Assembly (NCBI GenBank): GCA_973895155.1
Contig: OZ316899.1
Location: 2,255,573-2,319,572 of the forward strand
Length of the DNA: 64,000 bases
Source of the DNA: Marsupella aquatica
Taxonomy: Eukaryota > Plantae > Marchantiophyta
Direction: 5' to 3'
Shown here: one piece after another, positions 5,356 to 41,622 of the stretch
Position numbering within the stretch: position 1 is the stretch's first letter
Layout: each line of letters opens with the position of its first letter
Position numbers and translations under genes: made by a program
Notes under the pieces: generated by a model
Told to the model about the DNA's origin: nothing
Seen by the model: the letters and a program-made list of their open reading frames with translations, nothing else
The model's database searches: none

Positions 5356-5367
5356 GCTCTGAGACTA
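5356..5367 (-). other. Possible degenerate tRNA-iMet primer-binding site of H
   Basis: Plus-strand gctctgagacta versus the expected gctctgatacca (2 mismatches), about 130 nt upstream of the gag ATG. Confidence 0.35.
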
Positions 5368-5369
5368 CA

Positions 5370-17600: not shown

Positions 17601-17788
17601 TGTGATGCCGTGCCAGGATCACGAAGTACTTAGTTAAGCCTAAAATAATGGCTAAATAAAGATTAGGTAGATATAATTAGGGAGTTATAAAGATCGAAGC
17701 CGATTTCAATATGTTTGGGGGAAATTGTGATGGGATTTGATCCAACGGTCGTGATTAAGTGGGATTCGGGTTATGACCTAATCAGGGC

Positions 17789-18804
17789 TTGATCACGCAA
17801 GCCATAAGGAGGCGGCTTCGTAAGGAGGGGACCGACACTCTGTACACTAGTGCAATTGCTTGTTCGATCAACCTAGGGAATCAGCTGCCGATCGAACGGG
17901 GGAGGTGGTTTGAGAAATTGCGCAGGTTCTTGGCATTCGGTGGAATGAACATGGTGAATCAGGTAGGGAAGTTTTGGGGCTGTTTGCTTGAAGAAGCAAG
18001 GCAGCTGATACCTACATATGAAGACGTTAAGCCGGAGCGCGCAGCCAAAGAACGAGCAGAGCTTGCGTGATATGGGCAATTCACAAATCGGCATTCGTAG
18101 ATACGGAGGAGGTATTGGAAAAGTTCTTGTGGACACCCACCAGTGCGGAGCTTGACGAATTGCTAATTCGGGAGAATAAGGTCGTGGGGATCAGGGAGGC
18201 AATCAAGAACGTCGGGCAACCACTTTGGGAATTGAAGGGTCACACTGCAAAGTGGACAAAGGCAACTATTCTTGGGGAGTATTCAGGCACTGAAGAGATG
18301 AAGCGCAAGGGAGGTTCGGCATCTGCAACTCCAGCAAAGCGAACTAGGTTGGAGAGACCAATCAAGATGGAATCCGGGCCAATTAGAGATCGGGCTGTAG
18401 AAGATAAAAACATGACAGGGTGGGCGAACAGGTTACCTGCCAATTTACAATTATAGTTCGCAAGAGATGAGGATGAGGTCTTCAGTGCCGTTCAGGATAA
18501 CAAATATGCAGGATATATGAATGACACTGGGTTGGAGGGCTTTGTCAGGTTGCCCTGGAGAATGGTAGACATACCGGATGAGGATCTGTTGGACTTTGTG
18601 GGATGCTGGGAGGCTTCTTCCAACACAACGCTGCTGTATGGAAAGGTGTTCAAATTAACTCCTGCGCTTATCGAAGCCGTGTTCACTTTACCAACAGGAA
18701 GGAAAACAAAGGTGGAGCAGAGGAAGACGTTGCCAGACGACCAGTTCAGGTCATTTCCAGGGCCTTCCACTAAGAATGGGTTTTTTAGGAATCAGGAGTT
18801 ATGA
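17789..18804 (+). pseudogene. LTR-internal accessory gene of B, 5' LTR copy (stops, truncated by deletion)
   Basis: FWGCLLEEARQLIPTYED...MNDTGLEGFVRLPW...DLLDFVGCWE...FPGPSTKNGFFRN, homologous to the C ORF. Confidence 0.85.
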
Positions 18805-19634
18805 TATCAGTGTTATGATATCTGTTGCTTGATCGATTAAAGTCAGATAGGGTGAACTGTTGAGCAAAATACAATCGCATTGCCTTGATTGGAGACTGCC
18901 CAAATCAAACTCTGAGAGAATAGTGAGGATTGAGAGTGTTAGTCGGTGAAGTGTGGGTTGAGTCAGTCTGAAAAAGACCTTCAGCCGGCTTAAGAAATTA
19001 AGCCGTAGAGGTACATTCCGGGGGCGAAATACAAATATACCTGAAGAAGTTAAAGAGGAATTAGGTGTCTCAGTTGTGCACAATTCACAAGCCCAGTGAA
19101 AGAATCGGTCTGGTAAGTGTGGACCCAAGGAGAGTGTGACGGGTACCCCGTCACGGGAAGTCACACATAACTGGTTGCAAAGGCCGATACCTTGTTAATA
19201 GTCAATGTAAATAAGCCATTTTTTAATTTTTAGTTAATTCCGTCATTATAGGTTGATGATGCCCCAGGTGACTTTATATTCTTTCTCTCATAATAGTTCT
19301 AAGATTTGCGGCGACCTAAGTGGGCAAATATTTTGGGACCTTGAAACTAGCCAGGACCAGCCCCATAGGACTTACCGTTTTGCTTCAAGAGCTATTGTTG
19401 AGACCCCCATTGCAAAGTCAGGAGAGGGGGGGGTTTTTTTTTAAATAAATCCCTCCTCAGGAGGGCGAGTCCCATTAGTGGCCGTCCGAGAGAAAGAGGG
19501 GCTGCCTCGCGAGCCCATAGGGCTGCGTGCCCGGGCGATTAATGGGGCTCCGTGAGCTGAAGGGGCTGCCTCGCGAGCCCATAGGGCTGCGTGCCCGGGC
19601 AATTAATGAGGCTCCGCGAGCTGAAGGAGCGCAA

Positions 19635-19868
19635 GCGAGCGGGGGGGGGAGTTAAAGGGCCTCCCGCGAGCTGGGAGGATCACGCGAGCGGGGGGGAGTT
19701 AAAGGGCCTCCCACGAGCTGGGAGGATCACGCGAGCGGGGGGGAGTTAAAGGGCCTCCCGCGAGCTGGGAGGATCACGCGAGCGGGGGGGAGTTAAAGGG
19801 ACTCCCGCGAGCTGGGAGGATCACGCGAGCGGGGGGGAGTTGAAGGGCCTCCCGCGAGCCGGGAGGAA
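19635..19868 (+). repeat. 47-bp G-rich tandem repeat, 4 full copies plus 1 variant
   Basis: Unit GCGAGCGGGGGGGAGTTAAAGGGCCTCCCGCGAGCTGGGAGGATCAC; preceded by two copies of a unit of about 62 bp at 19500-19625. Confidence 0.95.
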
Positions 19869-20290
19869 TGGCCGCGCGCCCTGCATAGGGCCGCGCGCAG
19901 GAGGACGCAAGGGTAAGGCCCGAGAAATGGGCCGGGGCGCATGGCGAAGGCGCCAGGAGTTTTTTCGGTTCTATTTTTTTTTCCTTCCTTTTTCTTTCCC
20001 TCTTCCTTTTGCACGACCCTCTCATTGCCGAAAGCAAAAACGGGGTTCTTCTCTCTCTTGCCGGAAGCTCTCTCCAGATTCTAATTATTTTTGAAGCTCT
20101 CTCTTTCATGGTGGATTAGTGGGGCTTGCTGGCGTCATTCTTCCAGGCATTAGTGGCGGCCGCACGGAGTAGTGACGGGAAATTGAGAGAATTTAAGTGA
20201 TCGGGCTACGGGGGCTGTTTCGGGCCAGGGAATTGACATTGCCACGGGTGACGGGATTGGTGATTGAGAAATTGATTTCGGGATGCATGG

Positions 20291-22147
20291 ATGCTAGATC
20301 AACCAGAGTTTAGTGCGTCACGCATTCGGAGATACAAGGCTGCTTACCGTGACTACGTGGAGACTCGGATTACACGGGAAAGGGAAGAGAGAGAAGTTAT
20401 GATGAGCACGGGATTGGCAGCGGGTTCCTCACCGGTGGGTAGGAAGATTTTTCGTCGAATTTATCCCAAGACCTCCACCAAGGTGATGGAGGATTGTCGG
20501 AACATTTTCCAAGCCACCGGGCTTACAGAATTCATGAAGGTGGAGATTACCATCCCTTCAGGGAAGAGCTGGGACATTGAGGCCGGGATGGAGTTCCGAA
20601 CGGAGGGAATCTACTTTGAATGTCTCAAACGTGTAGTGCCCCATGTGGAGTTGGCTAAGCTATTGTTTCTTGAGAATCAGAAATTCTCATTCACACCTCG
20701 GAATATCAGGGGAGAACTCACGTTGAAAATGGTGGCCACTTGGGTGACCAATCCTACCTCCACCACCGCCATCCCTCTTTCTGCTGTCAAGGATGTTGAG
20801 TATAAGGGCTTCCTGGCCAAGGTGCATCAACGGGTTCTTGGCAACGTGCAATCCGGAGTGCTGAATGAGGAGCATTTCGTGGTAGCTATGGACATCAAGA
20901 ACTACCCAGCCCATGTGTACGGATGGTGGTGCTACGGATTGAAGAAGCTATTGGCCGCTGAGCCCGGGAGTGTGAAACCAGGTGGGGCTGTACATTTGAT
21001 GGGGTCATTTGTATTGGCCAGGGCAGAAGGGTTGATTGGTTCTCCGGGGCATGAAGACACGGGATCATCTCTCACCACGGAGATCCGGAGTATTGCCACT
21101 ACCGTTTTAGGGAAGCTCACGGAGGAATCATTGTCTGCTGGTGGGGAGGATAATAGAGAAGAAGAGAACCAGGAGGATGATTGCACATTGGAGTGGCTTG
21201 AATCACTCGTGGGAGATCCGAAACAGCCTCTGGAATACAACATTCCGGATGTTTACTTGGCAGAGCTACGGGATTTCAGAGAGGGAGTCCACGAGGGACT
21301 CAAGCTAGTCCACGCATTGAGGGAGTCTCTCAAGCACGCCACAGTCAAAGTAGAGACGTTAGAGCAGAGCATCCTGTCACTGAAGGAGGTGATCAAGACC
21401 AAGGAGCAGACCATTCATGAGAAGGTCAGGCACATCAATGCAGCTCACGTAGAGATCACCAACTTGAAGGGAGCTTTGTCCACCAAGGCCAAGGAAGCAG
21501 AAGAAGTAGGAGCGTTGAGGCAAGCATTGGCCAAAGAGAAGCAAAATTCTGGAGAAGTGATGGAGTGGAGGAACCAGGTGGGAGCACTACGGAGTCAGGT
21601 GGCAGCCTTTGAGACACGAGCGAAGAGAAGTGAGGCCCTGAGTCTAGGGAAACGGAAGAGTCCCGGCACACCTGGCTCCACACTTTCCCCGGATGTGATC
21701 TCCCAAGCTATCGAGATGGTGGTGAAGGAGGTTAGTGGGAAGTATGGACCCTTGTTGGATGGAGCCAAGAAGAGTCAGGAGAAGAGTAAGAGCTTGGAGA
21801 AGAAGCTCCGGGAGGTACGGAAATCGTTACGGGAGGCTCAGGTCAGTACGGGGATGCCACCCAGGTCTGTCACCCCCGGGACTCCCATGGCCACGGGGCA
21901 AGTTCTACCGTTGGAGTTGCGGTCCGGAGAAGAGGCTACCCTCTGGAAGGACACAATTGGTGAGGGGTACATCAAGGCGTGGCAGGCCTTGGCTGCTTTG
22001 AGGAAGCGCGGGAGCAGCAGCACTAAGAGTACTCCGTCGAAGAAGAAGAAAAGTACGGTGGCACTCACTCCCGTGAGTGATGAGGAGGAGGACCACTCAC
22101 GGGGCACAAGTCCGGGCACCGAGAGCGAAGAAGAAGAGGAGGATTAG
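20291..22147 (+). CDS. 618-aa accessory protein encoded inside A's 5' LTR (plant-transposon-protein-like N domain, coiled coil, basic/acidic tail)
   Basis: Intact ORF; FQATGLTEFMKV aligns weakly with the B/C/D core; heptad-rich region at about aa 325-520; SKKKK and poly-E tail; no obvious transmembrane segment. Confidence 0.8.
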   Translation: MLDQPEFSASRIRRYKAAYRDYVETRITREREEREVMMSTGLAAGSSPVGRKIFRRIYPKTSTKVMEDCRNIFQATGLTEFMKVEITIPSGKSWDIEAGMEFRTEGIYFECLKRVVPHVELAKLLFLENQKFSFTPRNIRGELTLKMVATWVTNPTSTTAIPLSAVKDVEYKGFLAKVHQRVLGNVQSGVLNEEHFVVAMDIKNYPAHVYGWWCYGLKKLLAAEPGSVKPGGAVHLMGSFVLARAEGLIGSPGHEDTGSSLTTEIRSIATTVLGKLTEESLSAGGEDNREEENQEDDCTLEWLESLVGDPKQPLEYNIPDVYLAELRDFREGVHEGLKLVHALRESLKHATVKVETLEQSILSLKEVIKTKEQTIHEKVRHINAAHVEITNLKGALSTKAKEAEEVGALRQALAKEKQNSGEVMEWRNQVGALRSQVAAFETRAKRSEALSLGKRKSPGTPGSTLSPDVISQAIEMVVKEVSGKYGPLLDGAKKSQEKSKSLEKKLREVRKSLREAQVSTGMPPRSVTPGTPMATGQVLPLELRSGEEATLWKDTIGEGYIKAWQALAALRKRGSSSTKSTPSKKKKSTVALTPVSDEEEDHSRGTSPGTESEEEEED

Positions 22148-23278
22148 ATAGGCGTACGGACGTGGGTGTACGGCCTCCAGATTTCCAACATTTTAGTGGG
22201 GGGTCACTCATGGGCTTGTTGGGATGAGCTCGCGGAGCTGATTCCAACAAGAGGCGGCGCTCCTCAAACGGAGCCAGGATGAGCAAGTTATGGCCTGGAG
22301 AACTTATGTTTTTGCGGTACGGAAACGGCCATAACTCAGGGGTCTGAAGTCCGTTGAGGGAGCGACTTAGTGATTCGGAAGCAGGAAAAGAAGAGCTATC
22401 CAGGGGTGAGCTCAGGTGTGCACTTGGAAGGGCACCTAGTTTCGGCCATTTTGGGGTGCCTCTCACTTTCAGGGTTCACGTGTACTGTTGGGGCGCCGTC
22501 GAAGGCACCGTCGGCCCCCTTGTTTTGGGTTTAGGGTTTTAGCAGCATGTGTGTGCCGCATGCTCCTCTTCAGTTTAAGGATTTCTCTTAGTGCAAGGTT
22601 TTAGCGGCGCCGCTAGGGTAGCCGCCACCGTTGTGACCCTGTGAGGGGTGCTTTGGTGTGATTTTTCAGTATTTAGGGGGATAGCCCCGAAGTAGTTAGG
22701 GGGACTCAGTGTGAAGTTAGCAAGGAGGGATAGAGTGGAGCCTGAGGAGTTTGAAAGCGTGTTCAGAGTAGTGAGGGGGAGCCATACTCATTGTCCGGAG
22801 AGGCAGGAGTTGAGTAGACGGCAGGAGGCCGGGTTACTCATGCAATGTGTATCGTTTTTCCCAAGAGATATGGATCTGTACATTTGACTTGATGGGCTTT
22901 TGTTGTGTGTTCCTTCTCCCTTTTTCGCTTTCCGAATTGTGTTCTCCCGTTCTATGATTTGAAGAAACTTGCTTGGTTTGAGTCGGCCTTGTGAGTAGGG
23001 GTGGTGACAGCACTCTTTGGGTGACTCCGAGTGAAGGTGTAGTGGGGTAGTCGGCAGGACTTGATCAAAAGCTGTGGGGTGAGGGTAGTCGGTAGACTTG
23101 ATCAAAACCTACATTTCCGGGAGCGGAAACCAAAATACTCATCCTGGTGTGAAAAGAATCCAAATAGCGTCCCTCCACGACCCCGTAATACGATACCAAC
23201 GGTTTAAGCGAAGAAAAGTGCGGTTTGCACGTATTAACCGTTGGAGAGGCAAGTGACATAAGTGTGGTCTTTTGTTTT

Positions 23279-23297
23279 TGGCGCCGCTGCCGGGGAA
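23279..23297 (+). other. PBS of A, tRNA-Asp-like
   Basis: TGGCGCCGCTGCCGGGGAA, 20 nt after the LTR end. Confidence 0.9.
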
Positions 23298-23513
23298 TCC
23301 TTCTTCTTGTTTGACGACACGAAGGAGGGGAGCTACGTCTATTGGGAGTTCAAACCTATCAACCACAACGCAACTTGCGACGGTTGATACGTGAGAAGTT
23401 TGTTGGTTACTTTGTTATTGTACGTCAACCACAACGCATCGTGCGACGGTTGATGTTTACAAATATTGCTTTCTGAGACATTGGTGTAAGTTTGGAATGC
23501 AGGTCTCAATGGG

Positions 23514-26500
23514 ATGCCGAGAGGGAGAAGGGGAGGTAGAGGAAGTCCCCAACACACACGTACCCCAAGATCAGAGCTAGAAGGGGGGCCCTCTTGGATT
23601 GGGACCAGACGACGAGTTGCTGCCGAAGAACGCTTACGGCTTGCAGAAGAGAGGAGGTTGCCACTGGTGCTGGAAGAACAAGTTGGTGTGCAACAGGAAG
23701 AGGCTCAACGTAATGAGGCCATATGCCCAGACGAAGAGCCAGACATAGATCACGAGCGAGAAGAAGGAGAGCCCTTTGTGTTGGTGCAGTCTGAGTTACA
23801 AAATCTGATCCCAGAGCTCACTGCATTGCCACAAATCATCTCACACCTATCATCGGTGCTGTTACCGGTGGCCCAACAAGCGCCATTACCACCTGTGTTG
23901 ATACAGGCACCGGCTGCACCGATGGCAGCTGCACAACGTACCCGTGTTCAGTACGTACCCTTCAAGGGGAGACCAAAGGATGATCCAGACGAATGGATTG
24001 AGGAGTTTGAAGGGATTGCCGAAGCTAATGGGGAGTCTGCACATAAGCTCACTATCATTCCTGGAATGATGAGAGGGGAGGCAGGTCCATGGTTCATTTC
24101 GTTGTTGGCCAACGTGAAAGCTGATTGGGCTCTGTTCAAGCAAGCCTTCTTGAAGGAGTTCAGATCCATAGGAGTGGAGGCCACCTCACTATTAAAGGTG
24201 GGCCAACTCAGGATGAAGAAGAAGGAGTCATTACGGAGGTTTTTGCAAAGGTTCCAAAAGCTGGTACGTCGGATCCAAGCCCGTACCGATGATGCTATGC
24301 GTCAAGCCTGGTTTGTGGCTGCCCTACCAAGCAAGATGGGGTTCTTTGTACGTCAAGCCAAGCCAACCACATTGGCTGAAGCTATTGCAGCAGCGGAGTC
24401 ATACACCGCAGCTGATGCCACAAGCAAGCGTTGCCGAAGAAAGAAGCTGAAGCCGGTTGACAGTTCCTCCAGTGAGGAGTCGAGTGGATCTGATTCAGAT
24501 AGTAGTGATGAATCTGAGGATTCTGAGAGTACTACAGAGTCAGACACTACGGAGTCAGAAGCTGAAAGACGAAGGAGGAAGAAGAAGAAGTTGTCAAAGA
24601 AAGTCAAGAAGTCCTCTCACCGTGAAGTGATACTACCCACGGTGGCCGTTACACCATTGTCTACGGCAAGACGCCTGAAGGAGCAAGAGGCCAGATATGA
24701 TGAGCTGACGGAGCAAATGAAAGCGTTGAAAGTACATTTTGCCGGACTCAAACCTGAGAGGAGAAAAGTTCCGGTGGAGAGAGCCAATGTGTGGTGCACC
24801 AAGTGCATGAAGTTTGGTCATGCCCCGAAGGAGTGCCCAGCGGGAGAACCAGCCAAGGTTTTCCAAGTACGGGAGGAGGATGTTGAGGGGGCAAGCTACT
24901 CAAATCCTTCATATGCAGCGGAAGGGCCAATAGAGTACTTCATGGAGGAGCCACCAGAGGCCAACGTGTATAGTGTACAACCTCTCAACCCGGGACCACG
25001 GAGCATTCATGGAGTTTCAACAAACGCCGGAGCACCCGCATACTCCAACTATCCCAACGCTAACCCAGGGAATCGACCACCGTACCCTGGAGTGAGGAAG
25101 ATCCCTATTTGTTACAATTGTAGAGTGGCGGGCCACTACGCTAATGTGTGCCCAGAGCCCACCCGTCAAGGCAATGGAGATTTTGCCCGGCTGTGTCAAC
25201 TATGCAAGGGGGAGGGTCATCTTGCACCACACTGCCCAACCTTGGAGGCGTTCAAGGCTCAACCGATTGGGGCACAAGAGAAGAAGGGGCCGCCACCTCC
25301 TCTGAAAGAAGCTAGCGTCAACTTTCTCACCACGGAAGCAGTCGACACCCCTCTAATCACTAGAAGAGAAGAAACCGTAGTGAACATTCCCAAGCAAAGG
25401 ATGACCACCATAACGGAGGAGGTGGTACCGCTAGTCGTTGTAGTATCTCCAGTTGTTGAGATACCGGTGGTTGTTGTTGCAACATCTACGGAAGTTGAAG
25501 TTGCTAACCCCTCACCCCCAAGTCATGAGTGGACTCATGCTGAGAATCTACCGGAGGAAGACAGCGACGAGGAGAGAAGGCATTACTCTTGTTACCGAGT
25601 CTCCACTCGATCCGGCAAAAAGAAGGGCAAGTCCGAGCTCAAGCAGAAGTACAAGGAGGTGCATCAAGCTTCCACATCGGGTACCTCACACGAACCGGAG
25701 GTGCCACCCATGGAGGATAGTGACTTTGATCGGGACAACCCCAAGTTGTTCTATCCGAAGGTGGGAGAAGAGGTACGTAAGCAGTTGGAGGAGCTAGAAG
25801 CACAAGCCATGCAAGCGGCCATTGACAAAGACATGGAGGAGGCAAAGGCCAGAAAGAAAGCGGAGGAGAGGGTTGTTCGTTGGAAACCGGGAGAAGAGGT
25901 CATCCCACCCATACCTCCTGCAACCGCGTACAACATTGCTCAAGACATTCTGGATTGCCCAGTCAGTGCCACAATTGGTCAACTATTACGGGATAGCTCC
26001 CTATACCGTCGCCAAGTCAAGGAGATTCTCATGAGGAGGAGACGTAGAAGAAGGTTACCCAAAGTTGGGGCTGACCCCATACAAGTCAACTGGGTCACGG
26101 AGGATTTGGGTGCCCCAGAACTCACGGTGGACATCAATGGATGTGCAATACGGTTTGTACCGGTGGACGGGGGCTCGGGAGTCAACATCATGACTGAGGA
26201 GACGGCAAACCGGTTGGGGTATACAGAGTTAGAACCACCGGCACGTGCCATGAGGTTGGCTGATGGTGCACGGGTGGTGCCGTTGGGGTGTCTCACCAAG
26301 ATTCCAACAATGATTGGGGGAAAATCTTTCCCCCTCAACTATTTGGTGATGCGACCCGTTCGGCCGTACGGTTTTCCCATTTTAATTGGCAGGCCATGGT
26401 TGTATGTGGCCAAGGTCACAAGTGATTGGGGCAAACGGCAGTTTCGGTTTGGTATCCCCACTATCACTATTCCATGGTCAGCGGAGTCACCTCACGGGGA

Positions 26501-29500
26501 GACTACGACTATGGAGGAGGAATATGATTCAGAGGTCACCTCAGATGAAGACGAGGATGAAGTATACATGGTGAAACTGATTTCTCACCTCACGGAGGAA
26601 GATGTTTTTGGCCCCGGAGTTGCTACTCAAGAGCATGCAGTAGAGGAATCAGTTAGCCAAGTGCACGCTGTTCTAGAAGAGATGGAAGACGAGCGAAGCA
26701 AAATTGTGGAGGCTGAACCTCTAGAGATTCATGATAGGGAGGCAGAGGATCACCCCGAGGAGGTGGAAATGCAAGCCCACACGATCATGTTTGATGATGA
26801 GCAAAGAGAGCAGTTTTTGAATGACATCCTGGATGATGACTTTAGAGAGGAGCTATTGTCACATTACAAAGAATCTGACGTTGAAGAAATAATGGCCCAT
26901 GTGACAAAGGATCCACCTCCATCCCGACCAGACCAGGAGGAGAGTGATGCACCGGTGTATGGAGGGATGAGGCTCACACGGTTGGAAGAAACCTTTGATG
27001 AGGAGACACGCAACAAGTTGGACGTGATCAGGCCGGAGCAGTACACAAAGGTGGAAGTGGGTGAGGGCAAGACACTCAACATTGGTAGTAAGTTGGATGC
27101 TACGGAGCAACGCACGATTCAGGAATTGTTGAAAGAGTACCAAGACGTATTTGCGTGGAGCCACCAAGATTTGAAAGGAGTGCCACCTGAGTTTGGTGAG
27201 CACAGCATTGACCTGATGTCAGGAGCACGACCTGTGAGGCAACGCCAATACCGCCTCAACCCCAAATACTCACTCATGGTGAAGGAGGAGATTGACCGTT
27301 TGTTGGATGCAGGATTCATTTATCCGGTCATGCATAGTGAGTGGGTGTCACCCATCGTAATCGTGCCCAAGAAAAAGGGGCCAGACGGGAAGGTGAAAAT
27401 ACGGGTGTGCCAAGATTTTCGAAAGTTGAATGATGCGACCAAGAAGGATCACTACCCGCTACCGTTCACGGATATCGTGTTGGACATGGTAGCAGGTTGG
27501 GAGATATACAGCTTCTTGGATGGCTACTCTGGGTACAACCAAATCTGGATACGGGAGGAGGACCAACTCAAGACGGCTTTCACAACAGAGTGGGGGATTT
27601 TTGCATTCCGGAGAATGCCTTTTGGGTTGTGCAATGCCCCTGGCATGTTCCAACGGCTCATGATGAATATATTTCATGACTTTTTACGCAGGTTCTTGGA
27701 GATCTTTATTGATGACTTTGCTGTCTACGGCAAACGAGTCAAGCATCCGGAACACTTACGGTTGACTTTTCAGCGGTGCCGGGAGACTTGCCTGAAGCTG
27801 CATCCGGAGAAATGTTTCTTTGGAATTGAGGAGGGAATCCTATTGGGCCACAAAGTGTCTGCACGAGGGATTGAAGTTGATCGTGAGAAGGTCGCCGTGT
27901 GGGTAGCAGTCTCATTTCCCAAGAATGTGAAGGAAGTGAGAGGGTTCTTGGGGTGTGTTGGCTACTACCGACGCTTCATCAAAGACTTTGCCAAGGTAGC
28001 CATGCCACTCACTTCCATGTTGAAAAAAGGAAGTGAGTTTGAACCTACTCCTTCCCGTCAGGCTGCTTTTGATGAATTGAAGAAACGATTGCTAGAGGCC
28101 CCCGTGCTCATTACGCCCAATTGGAATAAGGAATTCCATGTTTACGTAGACGTATCAGGATTTTGCATCGGTGCCGTTTTGAGTCAGTTAGATGATGATG
28201 GAAGAGACCATCCCATCTACTTTGCCAGTAGGCAGTTGGCCCCGGCAGAGAAAAACTACTCACCCACCGATAGGGAGGCACTTGGTATCATCTACGCTTG
28301 TAAGAAGTATCGTCATTATTTGTTGGGGTACAAGGTTGTGTTCCACACGGATCACAACAGCTTGAAATACATGGTCAACAAGCCAGATCTGTCCGGGAGA
28401 ATTGCACGTTGGGTTTTGTTGCTACAAGAGTTCAACTATGAGGTGAGAGTAAGATCGGGGAAGAGTCATAGCAATGCAGACTTCTTCTCCCGTATTGAGG
28501 GAGCATCTGACTCCCAGGAGATTGATGATCGGTTCCCGGATGAGGAAGTGTTCAGCGTGAATACAGAGGCCACTACTTGGTATGGAGAAATTTTGGAATT
28601 TCTCCGCACGGCTAGAGTTCCCTCACGTTTGGGCCCGGAGAGAGCAGCAGTGTTTTTGCGTAAGACAGGTCCCTACTTGCTTGTGAAGGGAGTACTTCAC
28701 AAGTACGGCATGGATGGCCGACTTCGTCGTTGTTTGGAGGAAGCGGAGATACGTACAGTCATGGCAGCATTACATGAGGAGGAAGCTGGTGGCCACTTTG
28801 CACGGGAGACCACCGCAAGGAAAATACTAGATGCTGGATATTGGTGGCCAACTCTCTTTCGGGATGTACACCGGTACATCCAGCGATGTGATCCGTGCCA
28901 GCGTCAAGGCAAACCAGGGCCCTCCTCACGACACCCATTGGTGCCCATACTTCCTCTTGCACCCTTTGAGAAGTGGGGGGTGGACTTCATTGGCCCTTTC
29001 ACTCCCATCACACGAAGAGGGAGGAAGCGCTACATCATTCTTGCAACGGACTATGCCACCAAGTGGGTGGAGGCCCGAGCTACTGCCAAGGATGATGCCA
29101 ACACCACGGCACGTTTTTTGTATGAGCAGATTTTTACACGATTTGGTCCACCATTGGAGTTGGTAAGTGACAGGGGTACTCACTTCCTCAATCATACGAT
29201 TGAACGTTTGACGGAGAACTACTTGATCTCACATAGGAAGACCACTCCGTACCACCCTCGAGCCAACGGGCTCACTGAGAGAGCCAACGGGATCATGGGC
29301 AAGATCCTCAACAAAACGGTATCCGCTCACAAGACCGATTGGGATTTGAAGTTGTTGGCTGCCACTTACGCTTACAACCTGGCTCACAAGACTACCACGG
29401 GCCACAACCCCTATTTCCTTGTGTTTGGACAACACTCTCTTGTGCCGGTGGAATTTGAGGTTCCAACCATTCGAATCCTAACACGGGAAAGGGAAGGGGC

Positions 29501-29912
29501 AGAAGAAAGTGTCGCTTCACGGATCCAACAGTTGGAGCAACTCACGGAGACACGAGAAGAGGCTTTGACACATACGGAGCAGGAGCAAGGCAAACGCAAG
29601 TCACATTACGATTCCCGTCTCCGTCGTGTGTCCATTGAGGAGGGAGATTTGGTGCTCCTCTACGATAGCCGCTTCATGCATTTCCCCGGGAAGTTGCATA
29701 CACGGTGGATGGGACCCTACGTAGTGGATGCCGTCTACTCCAACGGCTCGGTTCAACTCAAGACATTGGAGGGGCAACTACTCAACACACGGATCAATCA
29801 AGAGCGCCTAAAGAAGTACTACACGGAGGAAGAGTATGGTGCTCGCGGGGGCGCTTCGCAATTAAGAGAGGAGCTATGTGACGGGTACCCCGTCACGGGA
29901 AGTCACACATAA
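23514..29912 (+). CDS. gag-pol: Gag-Pol polyprotein of A, 2132 aa (CA, 3 CCHC, PR, RT, RNase H, IN)
   Basis: DPDEWIEEFE gag; VPVDGGSGVNI protease; MPFGLCNAP and FIDDF RT; VYVDVSG RNase H; H..GHF...C..C, VDFIG, VSDRG, ERAN integrase; RWMGPY. Confidence 0.98.
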   Translation: MPRGRRGGRGSPQHTRTPRSELEGGPSWIGTRRRVAAEERLRLAEERRLPLVLEEQVGVQQEEAQRNEAICPDEEPDIDHEREEGEPFVLVQSELQNLIPELTALPQIISHLSSVLLPVAQQAPLPPVLIQAPAAPMAAAQRTRVQYVPFKGRPKDDPDEWIEEFEGIAEANGESAHKLTIIPGMMRGEAGPWFISLLANVKADWALFKQAFLKEFRSIGVEATSLLKVGQLRMKKKESLRRFLQRFQKLVRRIQARTDDAMRQAWFVAALPSKMGFFVRQAKPTTLAEAIAAAESYTAADATSKRCRRKKLKPVDSSSSEESSGSDSDSSDESEDSESTTESDTTESEAERRRRKKKKLSKKVKKSSHREVILPTVAVTPLSTARRLKEQEARYDELTEQMKALKVHFAGLKPERRKVPVERANVWCTKCMKFGHAPKECPAGEPAKVFQVREEDVEGASYSNPSYAAEGPIEYFMEEPPEANVYSVQPLNPGPRSIHGVSTNAGAPAYSNYPNANPGNRPPYPGVRKIPICYNCRVAGHYANVCPEPTRQGNGDFARLCQLCKGEGHLAPHCPTLEAFKAQPIGAQEKKGPPPPLKEASVNFLTTEAVDTPLITRREETVVNIPKQRMTTITEEVVPLVVVVSPVVEIPVVVVATSTEVEVANPSPPSHEWTHAENLPEEDSDEERRHYSCYRVSTRSGKKKGKSELKQKYKEVHQASTSGTSHEPEVPPMEDSDFDRDNPKLFYPKVGEEVRKQLEELEAQAMQAAIDKDMEEAKARKKAEERVVRWKPGEEVIPPIPPATAYNIAQDILDCPVSATIGQLLRDSSLYRRQVKEILMRRRRRRRLPKVGADPIQVNWVTEDLGAPELTVDINGCAIRFVPVDGGSGVNIMTEETANRLGYTELEPPARAMRLADGARVVPLGCLTKIPTMIGGKSFPLNYLVMRPVRPYGFPILIGRPWLYVAKVTSDWGKRQFRFGIPTITIPWSAESPHGETTTMEEEYDSEVTSDEDEDEVYMVKLISHLTEEDVFGPGVATQEHAVEESVSQVHAVLEEMEDERSKIVEAEPLEIHDREAEDHPEEVEMQAHTIMFDDEQREQFLNDILDDDFREELLSHYKESDVEEIMAHVTKDPPPSRPDQEESDAPVYGGMRLTRLEETFDEETRNKLDVIRPEQYTKVEVGEGKTLNIGSKLDATEQRTIQELLKEYQDVFAWSHQDLKGVPPEFGEHSIDLMSGARPVRQRQYRLNPKYSLMVKEEIDRLLDAGFIYPVMHSEWVSPIVIVPKKKGPDGKVKIRVCQDFRKLNDATKKDHYPLPFTDIVLDMVAGWEIYSFLDGYSGYNQIWIREEDQLKTAFTTEWGIFAFRRMPFGLCNAPGMFQRLMMNIFHDFLRRFLEIFIDDFAVYGKRVKHPEHLRLTFQRCRETCLKLHPEKCFFGIEEGILLGHKVSARGIEVDREKVAVWVAVSFPKNVKEVRGFLGCVGYYRRFIKDFAKVAMPLTSMLKKGSEFEPTPSRQAAFDELKKRLLEAPVLITPNWNKEFHVYVDVSGFCIGAVLSQLDDDGRDHPIYFASRQLAPAEKNYSPTDREALGIIYACKKYRHYLLGYKVVFHTDHNSLKYMVNKPDLSGRIARWVLLLQEFNYEVRVRSGKSHSNADFFSRIEGASDSQEIDDRFPDEEVFSVNTEATTWYGEILEFLRTARVPSRLGPERAAVFLRKTGPYLLVKGVLHKYGMDGRLRRCLEEAEIRTVMAALHEEEAGGHFARETTARKILDAGYWWPTLFRDVHRYIQRCDPCQRQGKPGPSSRHPLVPILPLAPFEKWGVDFIGPFTPITRRGRKRYIILATDYATKWVEARATAKDDANTTARFLYEQIFTRFGPPLELVSDRGTHFLNHTIERLTENYLISHRKTTPYHPRANGLTERANGIMGKILNKTVSAHKTDWDLKLLAATYAYNLAHKTTTGHNPYFLVFGQHSLVPVEFEVPTIRILTREREGAEESVASRIQQLEQLTETREEALTHTEQEQGKRKSHYDSRLRRVSIEEGDLVLLYDSRFMHFPGKLHTRWMGPYVVDAVYSNGSVQLKTLEGQLLNTRINQERLKKYYTEEEYGARGGASQLREELCDGYPVTGSHT
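29860..29876 (+). other. Polypurine tract of A
   Basis: AATTAAGAGAGGAGCTA immediately before the 3' LTR TG. Confidence 0.85.
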
Positions 29913-30376
29913 CTGGTTGCAAAGGCCGATACCTTGTTAATAGTCAATGTAAATAAGCCATTTTTTAATTTTTAGTTAATTCCGTCATTATAGGTTGATG
30001 ATGCCCCAGGTGACTTTATATTCTTTCTCTCATAATAGTTCTAAGATTTGCGGCGACCTAAGTGGGCAAATATTTTGGGACCTTGAAACTAGCCAGGACC
30101 AGCCCCATAGGACTTACCGTTTTGCTTCAAGAGCTATTGTTGAGACCCCCATTGCAAAGTCAGGAGAGGGGGGGGTTTTTTTTTAAATAAATCCCTCCTC
30201 AGGAGGGCGAGTCCCATTAGTGGCCGTCCGAGAGAAAGAGGGGCTGCCTCGCGAGCCCATAGGGCTGCGTGCCCGGGCGATTAATGGGGCTCCGCGAGCT
30301 GAAGGGGCTGCCTCGCGAGCCCATAGGGCTGCGTGCCCGGGCAATTAATGAGGCTCCGCGAGCTGAAGGAGCGCAA

Positions 30377-30753
30377 GCGAGCGGGGGGGGGGGAGTTAAA
30401 GGGCCTCCCGCGAGCTGGGAGGATCACGCGAGCGGGGGGGAGTTAAAGGGCCTCCCGCGAGCTGGGAGGATCACGCGAGCGGGGGGGAGTTAAAGGGCCT
30501 CCCGCGAGCTGGGAGGATCACGCGAGCGGGGGGGAGTTAAAGGGACTCCCGCGAGCTGGGAGGATCACGCGAGCGGGGGGGAGTTAAAGGGCCTCCCGCG
30601 AGCTGGGAGGATCACGCGAGCGGGGGGGAGTTAAAGGGCCTCCCGCGAGCTGGGAGGATCACGCGAGCGGGGGGGAGTTAAAGGGCCTCCCGCGAGCTGG
30701 GAGGATCACGCGAGCGGGGGGGAGTTGAAGGGCCTCCCGCGAGCCGGGAGGAA
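30377..30753 (+). repeat. 47-bp tandem repeat, 7 full copies plus 1 variant
   Basis: Same unit as at 19635. Confidence 0.95.
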
Positions 30754-31175
30754 TGGCCGCGCGCCCTGCATAGGGCCGCGCGCAGGAGGACGCAAGGGTA
30801 AGGCCCGAGAAATGGGCCGGGGCGCATGGCGAAGGCGCCAGGAGTTTTTTCGGTTCTATTTTTTTTTCCTTCCTTTTTCTTTCCCTCTTCCTTTTGCACG
30901 ACCCTCTCATTGCCGAAAGCAAAAACGGGGTTCTTCTCTCTCTTGCCGGAAGCTCTCTCCAGATTCTAATTATTTTTGAAGCTCTCTCTTTCATGGTGGA
31001 TTAGTGGGGCTTGCTGGCGTCATTCTTCCAGGCATTAGTGGCGGCCGCACGGAGTAGTGACGGGAAATTGAGAGAATTTAAGTGATCGGGCTACGGGGGC
31101 TGTTTCGGGCCAGGGAATTGACATTGCCACGGGTGACGGGATTGGTGATTGAGAAATTGATTTCGGGATGCATGG

Positions 31176-33032
31176 ATGCTAGATCAACCAGAGTTTAGTG
31201 CGTCACGCATTCGGAGATACAAGGCTGCTTACCGTGACTACGTGGAGACTCGGATTACACGGGAAAGGGAAGAGAGAGAAGTTATGATGAGCACGGGATT
31301 GGCAGCGGGTTCCTCACCGGTGGGTAGGAAGATTTTTCGCCGAATTTATCCCAAGACCTCCACCAAGGTGATGGAGGATTGTCGGAACATTTTCCAAGCC
31401 ACCGGGCTTACAGAATTCATGAAGGTGGAGATTACCATCCCTTCAGGGAAGAGCTGGGACATTGAGGCCGGGATGGAGTTCCGAACGGAGGGAATCTACT
31501 TTGAATGTCTCAAACGTGTAGTGCCCCATGTGGAGTTGGCTAAGCTATTGTTTCTTGAGAATCAGAAATTCTCATTCACACCTCGGAATATCAGGGGAGA
31601 ACTCACGTTGAAAATGGTGGCCACTTGGGTGACCAATCCTACCTCCACCACCGCCATCCCTCTTTCTGCTGTCAAGGATGTTGAGTATAAGGGCTTCCTG
31701 GCCAAGGTGCATCAACGGGTTCTTGGCAACGTGCAATCCGGAGTGCTGAATGAGGAGCATTTCGTGGTAGCTATGGACATCAAGAACTACCCAGCCCATG
31801 TGTACGGATGGTGGTGCTACGGATTGAAGAAGCTATTGGCCGCTGAGCCCGGGAGTGTGAAACCAGGTGGGGCTGTACATTTGATGGGGTCATTTGTATT
31901 GGCCAGGGCAGAAGGGTTGATTGGTTCTCCGGGGCATGAAGACACGGGATCATCTCTCACCACGGAGATCCGGAGTATTGCCACTACCGTTTTAGGGAAG
32001 CTCACGGAGGAATCATTGTCTGCTGGTGGGGAGGATAATAGAGAAGAAGAGAACCAGGAGGATGATTGCACATTGGAGTGGCTTGAATCACTCGTGGGAG
32101 ATCCGAAACAGCCTCTGGAATACAACATTCCGGATGTTTACTTGGCAGAGCTACGGGATTTCAGAGAGGGAGTCCACGAGGGACTCAAGCTAGTCCACGC
32201 ATTGAGGGAGTCTCTCAAGCACGCCACAGTCAAAGTAGAGACGTTAGAGCAGAGCATCCTGTCACTGAAGGAGGTGATCAAGACCAAGGAGCAGACCATT
32301 CATGAGAAGGTCAGGCACATCAATGCAGCTCACGTAGAGATCACCAACTTGAAGGGAGCTTTGTCCACCAAGGCCAAGGAAGCAGAAGAAGTAGGAGCGT
32401 TGAGGCAAGCATTGGCCAAAGAGAAGCAAAATTCTGGAGAAGTGATGGAGTGGAGGAACCAGGTGGGAGCACTACGGAGTCAGGTGGCAGCCTTTGAGAC
32501 ACGAGCGAAGAGAAGTGAGGCCCTGAGTCTAGGGAAACGGAAGAGTCCCGGCACACCTGGCTCCACACTTTCCCCGGATGTGATCTCCCAAGCTATCGAG
32601 ATGGTGGTGAAGGAGGTTAGTGGGAAGTATGGACCCTTGTTGGATGGAGCCAAGAAGAGTCAGGAGAAGAGTAAGAGCTTGGAGAAGAAGCTCCGGGAGG
32701 TACGGAAATCGTTACGGGAGGCTCAGGTCAGTACGGGGATGCCACCCAGGTCTGTCACCCCCGGGACTCCCATGGCCACGGGGCAAGTTCTACCGTTGGA
32801 GTTGCGGTCCGGAGAAGAGGCTACCCTCTGGAAGGACACAATTGGTGAGGGGTACATCAAGGCGTGGCAGGCCTTGGTTGCTTTGAGGAAGCGCGGGAGC
32901 AGCAGCACTAAGAGTACTCCGTCGAAGAAGAAGAAAAGTACGGTGGCACTCACTCCCGTGAGTGATGAGGAGGAGGACCACTCACGGGGCACAAGTCCGG
33001 GCACCGAGAGCGAAGAAGAAGAGGAGGATTAG
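31176..33032 (+). CDS. Second copy of the 618-aa LTR-encoded accessory protein (one A/V difference)
   Basis: Identical to 20291-22147 except WQALAAL versus WQALVAL. Confidence 0.8.
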   Translation: MLDQPEFSASRIRRYKAAYRDYVETRITREREEREVMMSTGLAAGSSPVGRKIFRRIYPKTSTKVMEDCRNIFQATGLTEFMKVEITIPSGKSWDIEAGMEFRTEGIYFECLKRVVPHVELAKLLFLENQKFSFTPRNIRGELTLKMVATWVTNPTSTTAIPLSAVKDVEYKGFLAKVHQRVLGNVQSGVLNEEHFVVAMDIKNYPAHVYGWWCYGLKKLLAAEPGSVKPGGAVHLMGSFVLARAEGLIGSPGHEDTGSSLTTEIRSIATTVLGKLTEESLSAGGEDNREEENQEDDCTLEWLESLVGDPKQPLEYNIPDVYLAELRDFREGVHEGLKLVHALRESLKHATVKVETLEQSILSLKEVIKTKEQTIHEKVRHINAAHVEITNLKGALSTKAKEAEEVGALRQALAKEKQNSGEVMEWRNQVGALRSQVAAFETRAKRSEALSLGKRKSPGTPGSTLSPDVISQAIEMVVKEVSGKYGPLLDGAKKSQEKSKSLEKKLREVRKSLREAQVSTGMPPRSVTPGTPMATGQVLPLELRSGEEATLWKDTIGEGYIKAWQALVALRKRGSSSTKSTPSKKKKSTVALTPVSDEEEDHSRGTSPGTESEEEEED

Positions 33033-34267
33033 ATAGGCGTACGGACGTGGGTGTACGGCCTCCAGATTTCCAACATTTTAGTGGGGGGTCACTCATGGGC
33101 TTGTTGGGATGAGCTCGCGGAGCTGATTCCAACAAGAGGCGGCGCTCCTCAAACGGAGCCAGGATGAGCAAGTTATGGCCTGGAGAACTTATGTTTTTGC
33201 GGTACGGAAACGGCCATAACTCAGGCGTCTGAAGTCCGTTGAGGGAGCGACTTAGTGATTCGGAAGCAGGAAAAGAAGAGCTATCCAGGGGTGAGCTCAG
33301 GTGTGCACTTGGAAGGGCACCTAGTTTCGGCCATTTTGGGGTGCCTCTCACTTTCAGGGTTCACGTGTACTGTTGGGGCGCCGTCGAAGGCACCGTCGGC
33401 CCCCTTGTTTTGGGTTTAGGGTTTTAGCAGCATGTGTGTGCCGCATGCTCCTCTTCAGTTTAAGGATTTCTCTTAGTGCAAGGTTTTAGCGGCGCCGCTA
33501 GGGTAGCCGCCACCGTTGTGACCCTGTGAGGGGTGCTTTGGTGTGATTTTTCAGTATTTAGGGGGATAGCCCCGAAGTAGTTAGGGGGACTCAGTGTGAA
33601 GTTAGCAAGGAGGGATAGAGTGGAGCCTGAGGAGTTTGAAAGCGTGTTCAGAGTAGTGAGGGGGAGCCATACTCATTGTCCGGAGAGGCAGGAGTTGAGT
33701 AGACGGCAGGAGGCCGGGTTACTCATGCAATGTGTATCGTTTTTCCCAAGAGATATGGATCTGTACATTTGACTTGATGGGCTTTTGTTGTGTGTTCCTT
33801 CTCCCTTTTTCGCTTTCCGAATTGTGTTCTCCCGTTCTATGATTTGAAGAAACTTGCTTGGTTTGAGTCGGCCTTGTGAGTAGGGGTGGTGACAGCACTC
33901 TTTGGGTGACTCCGAGTGAAGGTGTAGTGGGGTAGTCGGCAGGACTTGATCAAAAGCTGTGGGGTGAGGGTAGTCGGTAGACTTGATCAAAACCTACATT
34001 TCCGGGAGCGGAAACCAAAATACTCATCCTGGTGTGAAAAGAATCCAAATAGCGTCCCTCCACGACCCCGTAATACGATACCAACGGTTTAAGCGAAGAA
34101 AAGTGCGGTTTGCACGTATTAACCGTTGGAGAGGCAAGTGACAGAGAGTATTGCGTTTCCAAGCTGAATAGGTGCCGTAAAGAAAGAGGACCAACATAAC
34201 CAAGTGGTTTATGATCGGTTGAGGGTAGTTCTCGGTGTTAGAGGTCTTGGGAACCATGCCACATTTT

Positions 34268-34285
34268 TGGCGCTAGATGGAGGGG
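34268..34285 (+). other. PBS of B, tRNA-Asn-like
   Basis: TGGCGCTAGATGGAGGGG, compared with TGGCGCTAGAAGGAGGGG complementary to plant tRNA-Asn (recalled); 4 nt after the LTR end. Confidence 0.8.
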
Positions 34286-34529
34286 GCATTCTTACTTGTG
34301 AATTGTTTGTTGCGCAGAGTTAGGTGATGAACAAATTCACACCACGAGAAGAGCGAGCAACACTAAGGGAGGAAGCGCGGTTGCAGCAAATTGCAAGGTG
34401 GAAAGAGTCGAAGAGGGTGAAGATTGCAATCGGCAATGGCGGTTCACGAGGTACTCTTGGAGTAGAACTGGAAGCTGTGGAAGGGGATCTGTTGAGTAGT
34501 AACGTGCCCAGTACCAACCCAGTTCACCA

Positions 34530-37500
34530 GTGCAAGAGATGGGTGAGCCAGATCCACAATTTGGTGGGCGAGCAGCACCACGGCTCAGTCAGAGATCACG
34601 AATCCATTACAAAGCATTCCATGGTAAACATGAGGAGGATCCGGATGACTGGCTAGAGGAGTTTGATGGGACTGCAACTGCTAATGGAGAGTCCGCTATG
34701 AAGATGCAGATCCTACCTGGATTGTTTAAGGGTGAGGCTCGACCATGGTATTCCAATTTGGAACCAGGGGAACAGAATGAATGGGTCACCTTCAAGCAAC
34801 TGTTTGTCAAGGAATTTCGTCCCATTGGGACGTCTGAATTGGCAATGTTGAAGCTAGGACAGCTTCAATTCAAGGAGAACAAGTCTTTCCGGAAATTCTT
34901 GCAGCGATTCCACAAATTGGTGCGACGAACCAAGACCAATGCATCAGACGAAATGCAGTTGCAGTGGTTGGTTAATGCTCTACCTCAGAAGATGAGTTTC
35001 GCGATTCGGAAGGGGAATCCGGAGTCTTTAGCGAAGGTCATTCGTGATATTCAGTTATACATCAATGCTGATATCACGAGCCGGAAAAAACACTATAAGT
35101 CTGAGGATTCATCTTCAGAGGAGGAATCCGGCAAGAAAAAGACTAAGAAAAAGCGATCCAAGAAAATTAAGGAGGAGAGTAGTAGCTCTGAGGGTGATAC
35201 CAGTAAGAGTGAAACATCTTCCAGCTCGGAGGATGGTGACAGGAGTAAGAAGAAGAAAATCACAAAGACAGAGAGGGTTGCAGAAAAGGTGAAAACCAAG
35301 TTGGATTCCAAGAAAGCATCTCCGGATCAGTTAACAGCTATCACGGAGCAGCTGAAAGCATTATTAGCCAACGCAAAGCCGTTGAACAAGGAGGCAGCCG
35401 ATGACACCTCAGTATGGTGCGCTCACTATTATACCACCGGACATCATAAGGATGTCTGTCCAAAGCGTGGTACAAAGCATGTTCGATTGATAACCGACGG
35501 AACGATAGGGGAGTTTGAGGTGGAGTATATACTTGGAGATGCCGCGGATAGTGTGTTCGGCATCAGTGAGGCCGGAGCCCGAGATTTGGCTAACCGACCC
35601 ACTTCATTGTGGGGAGCGTTGAGAACCAATGCAGGGGAGATGTATCCCCGCATCATTCAAAATCCAACTACACCTCCACAACCAAATGTTCAGAGATTTG
35701 CAGCATGCTACAACTGCGGTCAACCAGGTCAGTTCTCCCGGGAGTGCACCAATGCAAGGAAACAGGCGGATGGTCAGCCAGTCAAGCTTTGTATGGGTTG
35801 TAAAGGAGAAGGGCATATACTTACCCAATGCCCCATTTGGTTAGCCGGGATGGCTGCTGTACCTGTCAAAACTGCACCAAAGGTATTACCAGCAACAACT
35901 ATGCCGGGAGGAGCCCAGGTGAATCATATTGACTTAGGATGGCGTGAAGAAGCACGAGGAGAATTTGCACCTTCTGACGATGAAGCAGACGCCCTGTCCA
36001 CTTATTCCAAAGAAGAGGTTGATGCCGAGTGTTACCGTGTGTCCACTAGATCCACCAGAAGGAAGCAAAGGTGGGAGGGAATTATCAAGAACCAAAAGCC
36101 GTGGAAGGAAGATGCGTCTGATTCCACATATTTGGGTTCTAACGCAAGGCCCCTGTCAATGAGGACCCGCAAGTCGTACCTGGTGATCCCAGTCCATCCC
36201 AAGATAGTGATTTTGATCGAACGCATCCCAGTTTATTTTTTCCGGCAGTCACAGCTAGTGTGAAGGACCAGTTGCTAGAGCTGGAAAAGGACGAGAATGA
36301 GGTTGCACTCCAGAAGGATATTAAGAGAGCTGGCAAGCGAATGCAGGAGGAAATTGTTTTTGCTTCAAAGAAAGCAGTGGAGGACAGAAGTGTGTCACCA
36401 CTGACTTCACCAAGCACACCTCTAGAAACAAGGGAACCAGAATCATTACCAACTCAGGAGAATCCTCTTAGAGCAATTAAATTACCAGTGGAGGATGACA
36501 CATAGAAACAGTTGGTGCCATACAACTTGGCAAAGGATGTGTTGGAATCACGCGTTACGGCTACTGTGGGTCAATTATTAAAAAATAGCCCATATTTTCA
36601 GAAGCAATTGAAAAAAGCCATTGCCGGGAAGCCAAGGCTTCCTCGAGTAGCCACTCGTACGGATGTCATGATGATTCAGGAGGATAGGGGAGCCCCTTGC
36701 TTACCAGTCATCATCAATAAAGAAAAGGTTATGCATGTACCAATCGATGGAGGGTCTGGGGTATGCATACTGATTGATTCAACAGCGGCGGCTTGGGGAT
36801 TCAAACCAGAATTAACAGGGAGGGTGCTGAATATGGCGAATGGCTATCAGGTAGTTCCCACTGGCATCCTTAAAGAAATACGCACGGAGATTGGTGGTAT
36901 CGCATTCAGCATCAATTACATTGTGATGAAGCCGGTGAACCCTACCTCATTTCGGGTGCTGATAGGACGACCCTGGTTGTACCTTGCAAAAGTTGTGGAA
37001 AACTGGGGAACAAAACAGTTTACATTCGGAACTCCACCTATTACCATGTCATGGGAGGTAGAGGATGAAGCAACCAGGTTGATTCGTGAAGCAGACGGCT
37101 ATGATACTGGGTTAGAATCTGCTGATGATGTGCGTTGGCTGGAATGCTTATCAGGAGTATCAGAAGAGAGTGTGTTTGGACCTGACACACCTCCCAGCGG
37201 ACTCTGGATGGGAGACGCAGATTCCATGCGACCAATCGTTCCGGAAATTGAGGAAGAGCCCATTTCAATTCCACTAATGTTAGCAAGGAAGAGCCGGATG
37301 GAACCTATCATAGAGGAAGGCAATTCAGAATGCCAGGAAGTCCCAGCTGACAGCTGCTTCGCAATTGAGGCCGCCTTTTTGGAATCAATTATCATGGATA
37401 AAGAAACTGAATCACAGGTTCAAGTGGAGGAACTTGTTCTATCAAAGGATCCCAACGTCATGACGGTGGATTTTCATCGAGCGCTGTGGCACAGTGGCCG

Positions 37501-40500: not shown

Positions 40501-40800
40501 GATAAGAAGCTAAGACCAATCTGTATTCAGACTGGAGATTTAGTGTTACTGTATGACAGCAGGTACGTAAAATTCCCTGGGAAGCTTTACACTCGCTGGT
40601 TAGGACCATACAAAGTGGAGATGATGTTCTCCAATGGGTCAGTCCAACTAGCCAATATCACGGGCGAGGTTTATCCCGTAAGAGTACATTATGATAGGCT
40701 TAAAAAATACTACATGTATGAATTTGAAGATGTTCGCAAGGACGCTTCACAATTAAGTGGGGAGCTATGTGATGCCGTGCCAGGATCACAAAGTACTTAG
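34530..40800 (+). pseudogene. gag-pol: Gag-Pol of B, with several stops and frameshifts
   Basis: [50 protein letters not shown] across ORF pieces 34530-36263, 36260-37630, 37692-39206, 39294-40800. Confidence 0.95.
40751..40767 (+). other. Polypurine tract of B
   Basis: AATTAAGTGGGGAGCTA before the LTR TG; parallels A's PPT. Confidence 0.85.
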
Positions 40801-40954
40801 TTAAGCCTAAAATAATGGCTAAATAAAGATTAGGTAGATATAATTAGGGAGTTATAAAGATCGAAGCCGATTTCAATATGTTCGGGGAAATTGTGATGGG
40901 ATCTGATCCAATGGTTGCGATTAAGTGGGATTAGGGTTATGACCTAATCAGGGC

Positions 40955-41507: not shown

Positions 41508-41622
41508 TATGATGCCTAGCCAGGAATCACTCGGCCAGTTAAGTAGGGAAAGCAGGAGTGCACCCTAGAAACACCTTAGTATAGGGACAAAACAAGGAAA
41601 ATATAAACAATTAGGGGCGACT

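Follow-up and report, generated by a model that had tools for sequence, protein, structure and literature searches.

An intact gene under purifying selection inside the long terminal repeats of a Ty3/gypsy retrotransposon of the liverwort Marsupella aquatica

We analyzed a stretch of 64,000 nucleotides from the genome of Marsupella aquatica (assembly GCA_973895155.1, contig OZ316899.1, positions 2,255,573–2,319,572 of the forward strand; hereafter the window). It contains a complete Ty3/gypsy retrotransposon, each of whose two long terminal repeats (LTRs) carries an open reading frame (ORF) of 618 codons, here named ORF-L. ORF-L is a genuine gene: it is intact, resident in the LTR, and under purifying selection. 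The coordinates of all features, counted from the first nucleotide of the window, are given in Table 1.

The element and its terminal repeats

Self-comparison of the window revealed a pair of direct repeats, 99.2–99.6% identical, which correspond to the two LTRs of the ORF-L element. Both have TG..CA termini, and the element is flanked by a 5-bp target-site duplication. The insertion hit a related but older Ty3 element (the outer element) in its 5′ LTR, and the empty site is kept in the 3′ LTR of the latter with a single GAGAG (55605–55609). Because of this unoccupied paralogous site, the bounds of the ORF-L element are exact to the base. The 5′ and 3′ LTRs differ by no more than 13 substitutions and a few indels; the difference in their length reflects the number of 47-bp tandem repeats, 4.8 copies in the 5′ LTR (19643–19867) and three more, 7.8 copies, in the 3′ LTR (30387–30752). 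So few substitutions across 4.1 kb of LTR indicate a young insertion. A reading made earlier from the sequence alone (the sequence-only reading) had described a young, uninterrupted Ty3/gypsy element with an intact ORF wholly inside both LTRs, the two copies being one residue apart. Our data agree on all of these points: gag-pol is intact and the element is uninterrupted.

Residues 1222–2103 of the gag-pol product matched Ty3 Gag-Pol (E = 1.5e-91). The polyprotein contained an Arc/Ty3-like capsid (156–291), three CCHC zinc knuckles, reverse transcriptase (RT; its active-site region aligned), RNase H, and integrase; the pol domain order RT–RNase H–integrase is that expected for Ty3/gypsy (Metaviridae). 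No chromodomain was detected in gag-pol. The protease region was only weakly recognizable: a relative's protease region aligned with a stretch of 105 aa at 30% identity, a simple pattern search gave no match to the canonical retropepsin active site, and the region had no PDB match. Residues 601–1180 (25314–27053; 580 aa), located between the zinc knuckles and RT, did not match any PDB entry either. The closest pol relative (L001, 73% over pol) originates from a Sphagnum-microbiome metagenome assembly, and the best relatives were metagenome proteins. Among named organisms, the best matches belonged to two liverworts, Riccia (58%) and Marchantia (46%). The pol relatives thus point to a bryophyte-like host and not to a seed plant. 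Angiosperm pol matches were about 40% identical, and some of these gene models carry Athila-ORF1 and extra-RNase-H Pfam domains in the similarity lists.

The primer-binding site (PBS) region gave a 28-nt match to L001 (96%), the sole non-coding sequence that aligned between the two elements. The positions of the PBS and of the polypurine tract (PPT) were alike in three related elements, the LTRs of which measured approximately 1.65–2.5, 2.48, and 4.12 kb. Wrong LTR bounds, with ORF-L in fact internal, are ruled out by the target-site duplication, the empty-site paralog, and the homology of PBS and PPT in the relatives. LTR limits that leave the ORF outside, which the sequence-only reading had named as evidence against itself, were thus not what we found.

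At its 5′ end, the LTR opens with an AT-rich stretch of 300 nt that includes the last pol codons, followed by its sole AATAAA (19444), the GC-rich tandem repeats, and the CT-rich tract. ORF-L comes next, and after it the non-coding block, the telomere-repeat-like motif, and a T-rich stretch that leads to the LTR end. Judging by its composition, the CT-rich tract could be a patch of promoter or leader, or a splice-acceptor tract.

Table 1. Features of the ORF-L element, the outer element, and ORF-X copies in the window
Feature	Position	Strand	Remarks
Outer Ty3 element	17601..55725	+	pol 61–64% identical to that of the ORF-L element; duplication TGTAG
ORF-L element, complete Ty3/gypsy LTR retrotransposon	19135..34143	+	LTR pair, TG..CA, 5-bp duplication, empty-site paralog
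Target-site duplication GAGAG	left 19130..19134, right 34144-34148	.	
5′ LTR	19135..23258	+	4124 bp; self-comparison, termini
GC-rich tandem repeats 5′ of ORF-L	19474..19870	+	64 bp × 2, 47 bp × 4.8; 3′ LTR copy 30239-30752 with 47 bp × 7.8
CT-rich (pyrimidine) tract	19960..20108	+	about 180 nt upstream of ORF-L start; direct reading
ORF-L, 5′ LTR copy	20291..22147	+	618 aa, intact
Constrained non-coding block	22198..22290 (3′ LTR: 33083-33175)	+	just past ORF-L stop; comparison with L008
Telomere-repeat-like motif (telobox)	22527..22542	+	reverse orientation
PBS-like sequence TTGGCGCCGCTGCCGGGG	23278..23296	+	about 20 nt past the 5′ LTR end; site and spacer common to L001
gag-pol, single ORF	23514..29912	+	2132 aa, 0 stops or frameshifts
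PPT	29864..29873	+	within the last pol codons, abutting the 3′ LTR; homologous in outer element and L001
3′ LTR	29877..34143	+	4267 bp; starts 36 nt before the pol stop codon
ORF-L, 3′ LTR copy	31176..33032	+	618 aa, intact; carries A568V compared with the 5′ copy
ORF-X in 5′ LTR of outer element	17789-18792	+	broken
ORF-X in 3′ LTR of outer element	40955..54800	+	split by the 12.5-kb insertion
ORF-X, longest copy	41623..45002	+	at least 4 interruptions; start 115 nt past LTR 5′ terminus; ends with coiled coil and acidic tail
ORF-X	9914..12714	-	broken; follows an LTR 5′ terminus of the same kind (12706-12714)
ORF-X	15074-15669	-	broken
ORF-X	6910-7239	+	broken

Coding evidence, family, and protein build of ORF-L

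The two ORF-L copies differ at two nucleotides, one of the changes being synonymous and the other giving A568V. The chance of an open frame of 623 codons anywhere in the LTR is approximately 4e-10. The G+C content at codon positions 1, 2, and 3 of ORF-L was 0.55, 0.43, and 0.61, respectively, the same pattern as in gag-pol. Comparison with a relative of ORF-L, L008, over 109 codons gave a nonsynonymous divergence (dN) of 0.28, a saturated synonymous divergence (dS), and their ratio (omega) of approximately 0.07–0.18; identity at the three codon positions was 73, 79, and 44%. In another relative, L005, which has one in-frame stop, these identities were 58, 71, and 33% over 298 codons. The two comparisons together correspond to a dN/dS of about 0.1–0.2. 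Both halves of the protein are under purifying selection in diverged copies. A chance ORF is ruled out by the above probability and by the coding-type conservation of codon positions; that ORF-L is an artefact of this kind, or of misplaced LTR bounds, is extremely improbable.

Just past the stop codon of ORF-L, the non-coding block was 89% identical to L008, though the synonymous sites of that pair are saturated. The block contains a hairpin (22215–22251) with a stable fold (z −2.8). It was not found in relatives lacking ORF-L, while L008 keeps both the block and ORF-L. An antisense ORF (22466–22065) was considered as the cause of this conservation and rejected, because it is not conserved outside the block. 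An Rfam search of the element returned no family, so none explains the hairpin block.

An exhaustive HMMER search of 1.84 billion protein representatives yielded 13 relatives of ORF-L, none of which is annotated with a Pfam family; similar angiosperm proteins were not found in this search. Nine of the 13 are fragments, 41–62% identical to ORF-L, on short Logan or ENA contigs, and the other four (L003, L004, L006, L007) are proteins of the leafy liverwort Calypogeia fissa with about 25–30% identity. Even relatives with only 25% identity retain the start codon and the domain order of ORF-L, and the start codon, N-terminal domain, mid motif, coiled coil, and C-terminal motif recur across the family. 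Several distinct fragmentary copies were present within a single sequencing run. The Calypogeia fissa homologues are dispersed, diverged, multi-copy, and partly disrupted, one of them being interrupted by another repeat. The selection signal, the multiple fragmentary copies, and the repeat-interrupted Calypogeia copy therefore indicate that the ORF-L family behaves as a multi-copy gene of mobile elements, selected in active lineages and decaying elsewhere.

Exact look-up of the ORF-L protein gave no record. Neither ORF-L alone nor the family alignment retrieved a match in word-indexed protein searches, probably because coiled-coil words swamped the candidates, and an NCBIfam search with ORF-L returned coiled-coil noise only. 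Scans of JGI metagenomes with the conserved N- and C-terminal motifs, as well as IMG/VR scans, revealed no relative of ORF-L. Derivation of ORF-L from gag and its relationship to the fused accessory ORF of an angiosperm gene model were tested and rejected. We also looked for terminal repeats or a separate target-site duplication of a nested transposon that could have brought ORF-L, and found none.

The AlphaFold model of full-length ORF-L had a predicted local distance difference test (pLDDT) score of 59.5 and was confident only in the helices 320–519, forming a coiled coil of about 200 aa (pLDDT above 90 over approximately 330–410), and 546–574. The N-terminal 250 aa, modelled apart, reached a pLDDT of 51. 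Basic patches are located at KRK 454, 504, RKR 571, and KKKK 584, and the C-terminus is acidic. No membrane segment was found in ORF-L, the maximum 19-aa hydropathy being 1.09, and it had no PDB match by sequence or by profile. The coiled coil, the KRK and KKKK motifs, and the lack of a membrane segment had all been read from the sequence before; of the structure prediction that had been proposed for the 618-aa protein, the coiled coil came out with confidence, whereas the N-terminal fold did not (pLDDT about 50). The protein seems to start with a globular domain, which an acidic linker connects to the coiled coil of about 200 residues; a small conserved helical domain and the acidic tail make up the C-terminal part, and basic patches are present as well. 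Judging by this build only, ORF-L is probably a soluble, oligomerizing, nuclear or nucleic-acid/chromatin-associated factor acting in trans for the element family. An activator or anti-silencing role is pure conjecture.

Placement of ORF-L in the LTR and competing explanations

LTRs of elements related to the ORF-L element contain a second ORF family, ORF-X, with at least five copies in the window. ORF-X and ORF-L have no significant similarity to each other (blastp E > 0.2; hhalign probability < 1%), and ORF-X did not match any PDB entry. Like ORF-L, ORF-X is LTR-resident, lies on the gag-pol strand downstream of pol and the PPT, and comprises an N-terminal domain, a linker, a coiled coil, and an acidic tail. 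Unlike ORF-L, all its copies in the window are broken, and it starts much nearer to the LTR 5′ end: in the outer element and two further LTRs, 115–190 nt after this end and straight behind pol and the PPT. No long LTR ORF was found in L001 or in the element of the window with a PBS at 58884. Because the unrelated ORF-X is also located inside LTRs of related elements, LTR-borne accessory genes look like a trait of this Ty3 clade.

With a probability of roughly 55%, we interpret ORF-L as a genuine accessory gene of a bryophyte Ty3/gypsy lineage, carried inside the LTR in a layout where it would belong to the unique 3′ (U3) region. In this clade, the PPT lies on the last pol codons, and all sequence 3′ of pol belongs to the LTR. 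Because the PPT overlaps the end of pol, any gene 3′ of pol is an LTR gene, and an accessory gene in this position is copied into both LTRs in each round of replication. Within U3, ORF-L would be the 3′-proximal gene of the genomic RNA, like retroviral accessory genes, and may be expressed either from its own promoter, represented by the tandem repeats and the CT-rich tract, or from a subgenomic RNA. The strongly constrained hairpin block past the ORF-L stop codon would be where the replication-critical part of the LTR begins, comprising the promoter, the repeat (R) region, and the unique 5′ (U5) region. Its product would serve the element family as an accessory, trans-acting, oligomerizing protein, as suggested by the protein build only. 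Comparison with the relatives lacking ORF-L shows that it was either gained within an already existing LTR frame or lost from those relatives. A recent shift of the PPT and PBS which swallowed an internal ORF is unsupported: two relatives lacking ORF-L share the same PPT and PBS positions.

Several observations weigh against this interpretation. The LTR lacks a canonical TATA box, and clear poly(A) or splice signals that could fix the limits of U3, R, and U5 were not found either (a crude splice scan was uninformative). The single AATAAA and the upstream CT-rich tract also fit a transcription start site upstream of ORF-L. The window holds one copy of the ORF-L element, and among the relatives with sufficient flanking DNA, none has ORF-L in an LTR; the four Calypogeia homologues have neither same-strand gag-pol within 10 kb nor a PBS motif. 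The closest pol relatives (L001, the outer element, and the element at 58.9–64 kb) are devoid of ORF-L. Neither homology nor a confident fold points to the function of ORF-L.

As to the place of ORF-L within the LTR, the sequence-only reading had based U3 on a TATA-like site and a telobox past the ORF. The telobox-like motif is indeed present, whereas the TATA-like site does not hold, and with it that argument for U3 fails. In our analysis, U3 nevertheless appears the more likely location by analogy, because ORF-X starts so close to the LTR 5′ end that little room is left for an upstream promoter. If transcription started upstream of ORF-L instead, near the AT-rich first 300 nt or past the tandem repeats, ORF-L would lie in R/U5 and precede all other ORFs of the genomic RNA. 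Such a layout requires a U5 or R of 3–3.8 kb and an equally long strong-stop DNA, and we know of no precedent for either at this size; gag-pol would, moreover, follow a 618-codon ORF, and the ORF-X start would leave almost no U3. The tandem repeats and the CT-rich tract right before ORF-L do resemble enhancer repeats with a plant leader, and the position of the only AATAAA agrees with this layout. Accessory ORFs at the 5′ side are known in the Tat lineage (PMC3485330), and ORF-L would then be of the Ogre-ORF1/Retrosat2-ORF0 type, except for its location upstream of the PBS. On balance, we regard an R/U5 placement as improbable.

The role of ORF-L in the element can be questioned as well, since an ancestor of the element may have acquired, in its LTR, a copy of a bryophyte family gene that came either from the host or from a different mobile element, and this copy would take no part in the life cycle of the element. 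Plant LTR retrotransposons are well known to capture genes (PMC2774510, PMC3726574, PMC13317346), and both the nearest pol relatives without ORF-L and the Calypogeia fissa homologues, one of which is near a P450 gene and another near an SMC-like gene, agree with such an origin. As in Bs1 and in the cases from surveys of maize, rice, and sorghum, a coding sequence is carried inside an LTR retrotransposon. However, captured fragments are usually partial and present in one or few copies, and many of those in rice are now pseudogenes, whereas ORF-L is a full-length member of a multi-copy family, and its omega is well below 1. Neutral decay does not agree with purifying selection on both protein halves, nor is a family whose copies are mostly fragmentary within single samples, typical of genes of mobile elements, expected of a passenger. 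Retention of ORF-L together with the adjoining non-coding LTR block in L008, and the presence of the second ORF family at the same LTR position in related elements, also argue against it. A passenger without function for the element is, in our opinion, unlikely.

ORF-L extends a known theme of plant retrotransposons; its new part is the location inside the LTR. Accessory ORFs of plant Ty3/gypsy elements have been placed in the internal region, on the 5′ side of gag or on the 3′ side of pol (PMC7264820, PMC11963269, PMC3485330). Like ORF1 of Ogre, ORF0 of Retrosat2, RIRE3, and RIRE8, the env-like ORFs of Athila/Tat, and the antisense ORFs of Grande, RIRE2, and Retand, ORF-L is an extra, lineage-specific, and fast-evolving ORF (PMC7264820, PMC3485330, PMC11963269). 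Its carrier also resembles the elements with such ORFs in being a non-chromodomain Ty3/gypsy with unusually long LTRs, and in that the ORF is kept in some lineages and absent from close relatives. Unlike these ORFs, ORF-L lies wholly in the LTR, which gives two copies per element, and showed no homology to a described family of them, its 13 relatives carrying no Pfam family; the lack of a membrane-spanning segment additionally distinguishes it from the env-like ones. The searchable literature contained no description of an LTR-resident ORF in plant retrotransposons, only retroviral items, in line with the earlier statement that this architecture is undescribed in plant Ty3 elements; coverage of the literature was partial, which makes this weak evidence.

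Retroviral genes in or overlapping U3 are sag of mouse mammary tumor virus and nef of primate lentiviruses. If the U3 placement is right, ORF-L is similar to them in being a complete accessory ORF which lies in the LTR, follows pol in the genomic RNA, and is duplicated in the integrated form, and it would be a plant parallel to retroviral U3 genes. It differs from sag and nef in the plant host and the absence of env, and no sequence relation or PDB match was found for ORF-L, the models being too poor for fold comparison.

Accessory ORFs of plant retrotransposons are common, functionally opaque, and defined as internal. A selected gene inside the LTR has a consequence for dosage, as each element holds two copies, and solo LTRs would still carry the gene after loss of all other parts of the element. 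Annotation routinely treats LTRs as non-coding and masks them, which may explain why only 13 relatives and no record of ORF-L were found in protein collections. Two unrelated ORF families at the same LTR position suggest a modular accessory slot. We tentatively propose, as a possibility with the odds against it, that a bryophyte Ty3/gypsy clade, owing to its PPT abutting pol, moved the accessory slot into U3 and fills it with interchangeable cassettes, such as ORF-L and ORF-X. Each LTR, including solo LTRs, might then be a self-contained gene with promoter repeats and a terminator, and hundreds of dispersed LTRs might supply a coiled-coil trans-factor independently of gag-pol.

Neighboring elements

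The 5′ LTR of the outer element hosts the ORF-L element, and its 3′ LTR hosts a 12.5-kb LTR-terminated insertion (41509–53996). This insertion resembles an LTR at its termini and shows a duplication of 5 bp (AAAGC), but lacks gag-pol and an internal direct repeat; it contains a copy of ORF-X and an inverted repeat (47542–47794 and 49920–50172). Possible explanations are a giant LTR, a rearranged one, and a non-autonomous derivative. Two more Ty3 elements were found in the window (58884–64000 on the plus strand and 366–6479 on the minus strand), whose RT shares 38–60% identity with the RT of the ORF-L element. The former has the same PBS sequence as the ORF-L element and is interrupted by the window end; an inverted LTR segment (5843–6479 and 56596–57251) is common to both. 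The metagenomic relative L001 was assembled as a tandem LTR-internal-LTR-internal array, and an ORF of 81 aa for an Elf1-type zinc-ribbon protein (1938–2378 and 11428–11868 of L001) is located in its 1.1-kb leader between the PBS and gag.

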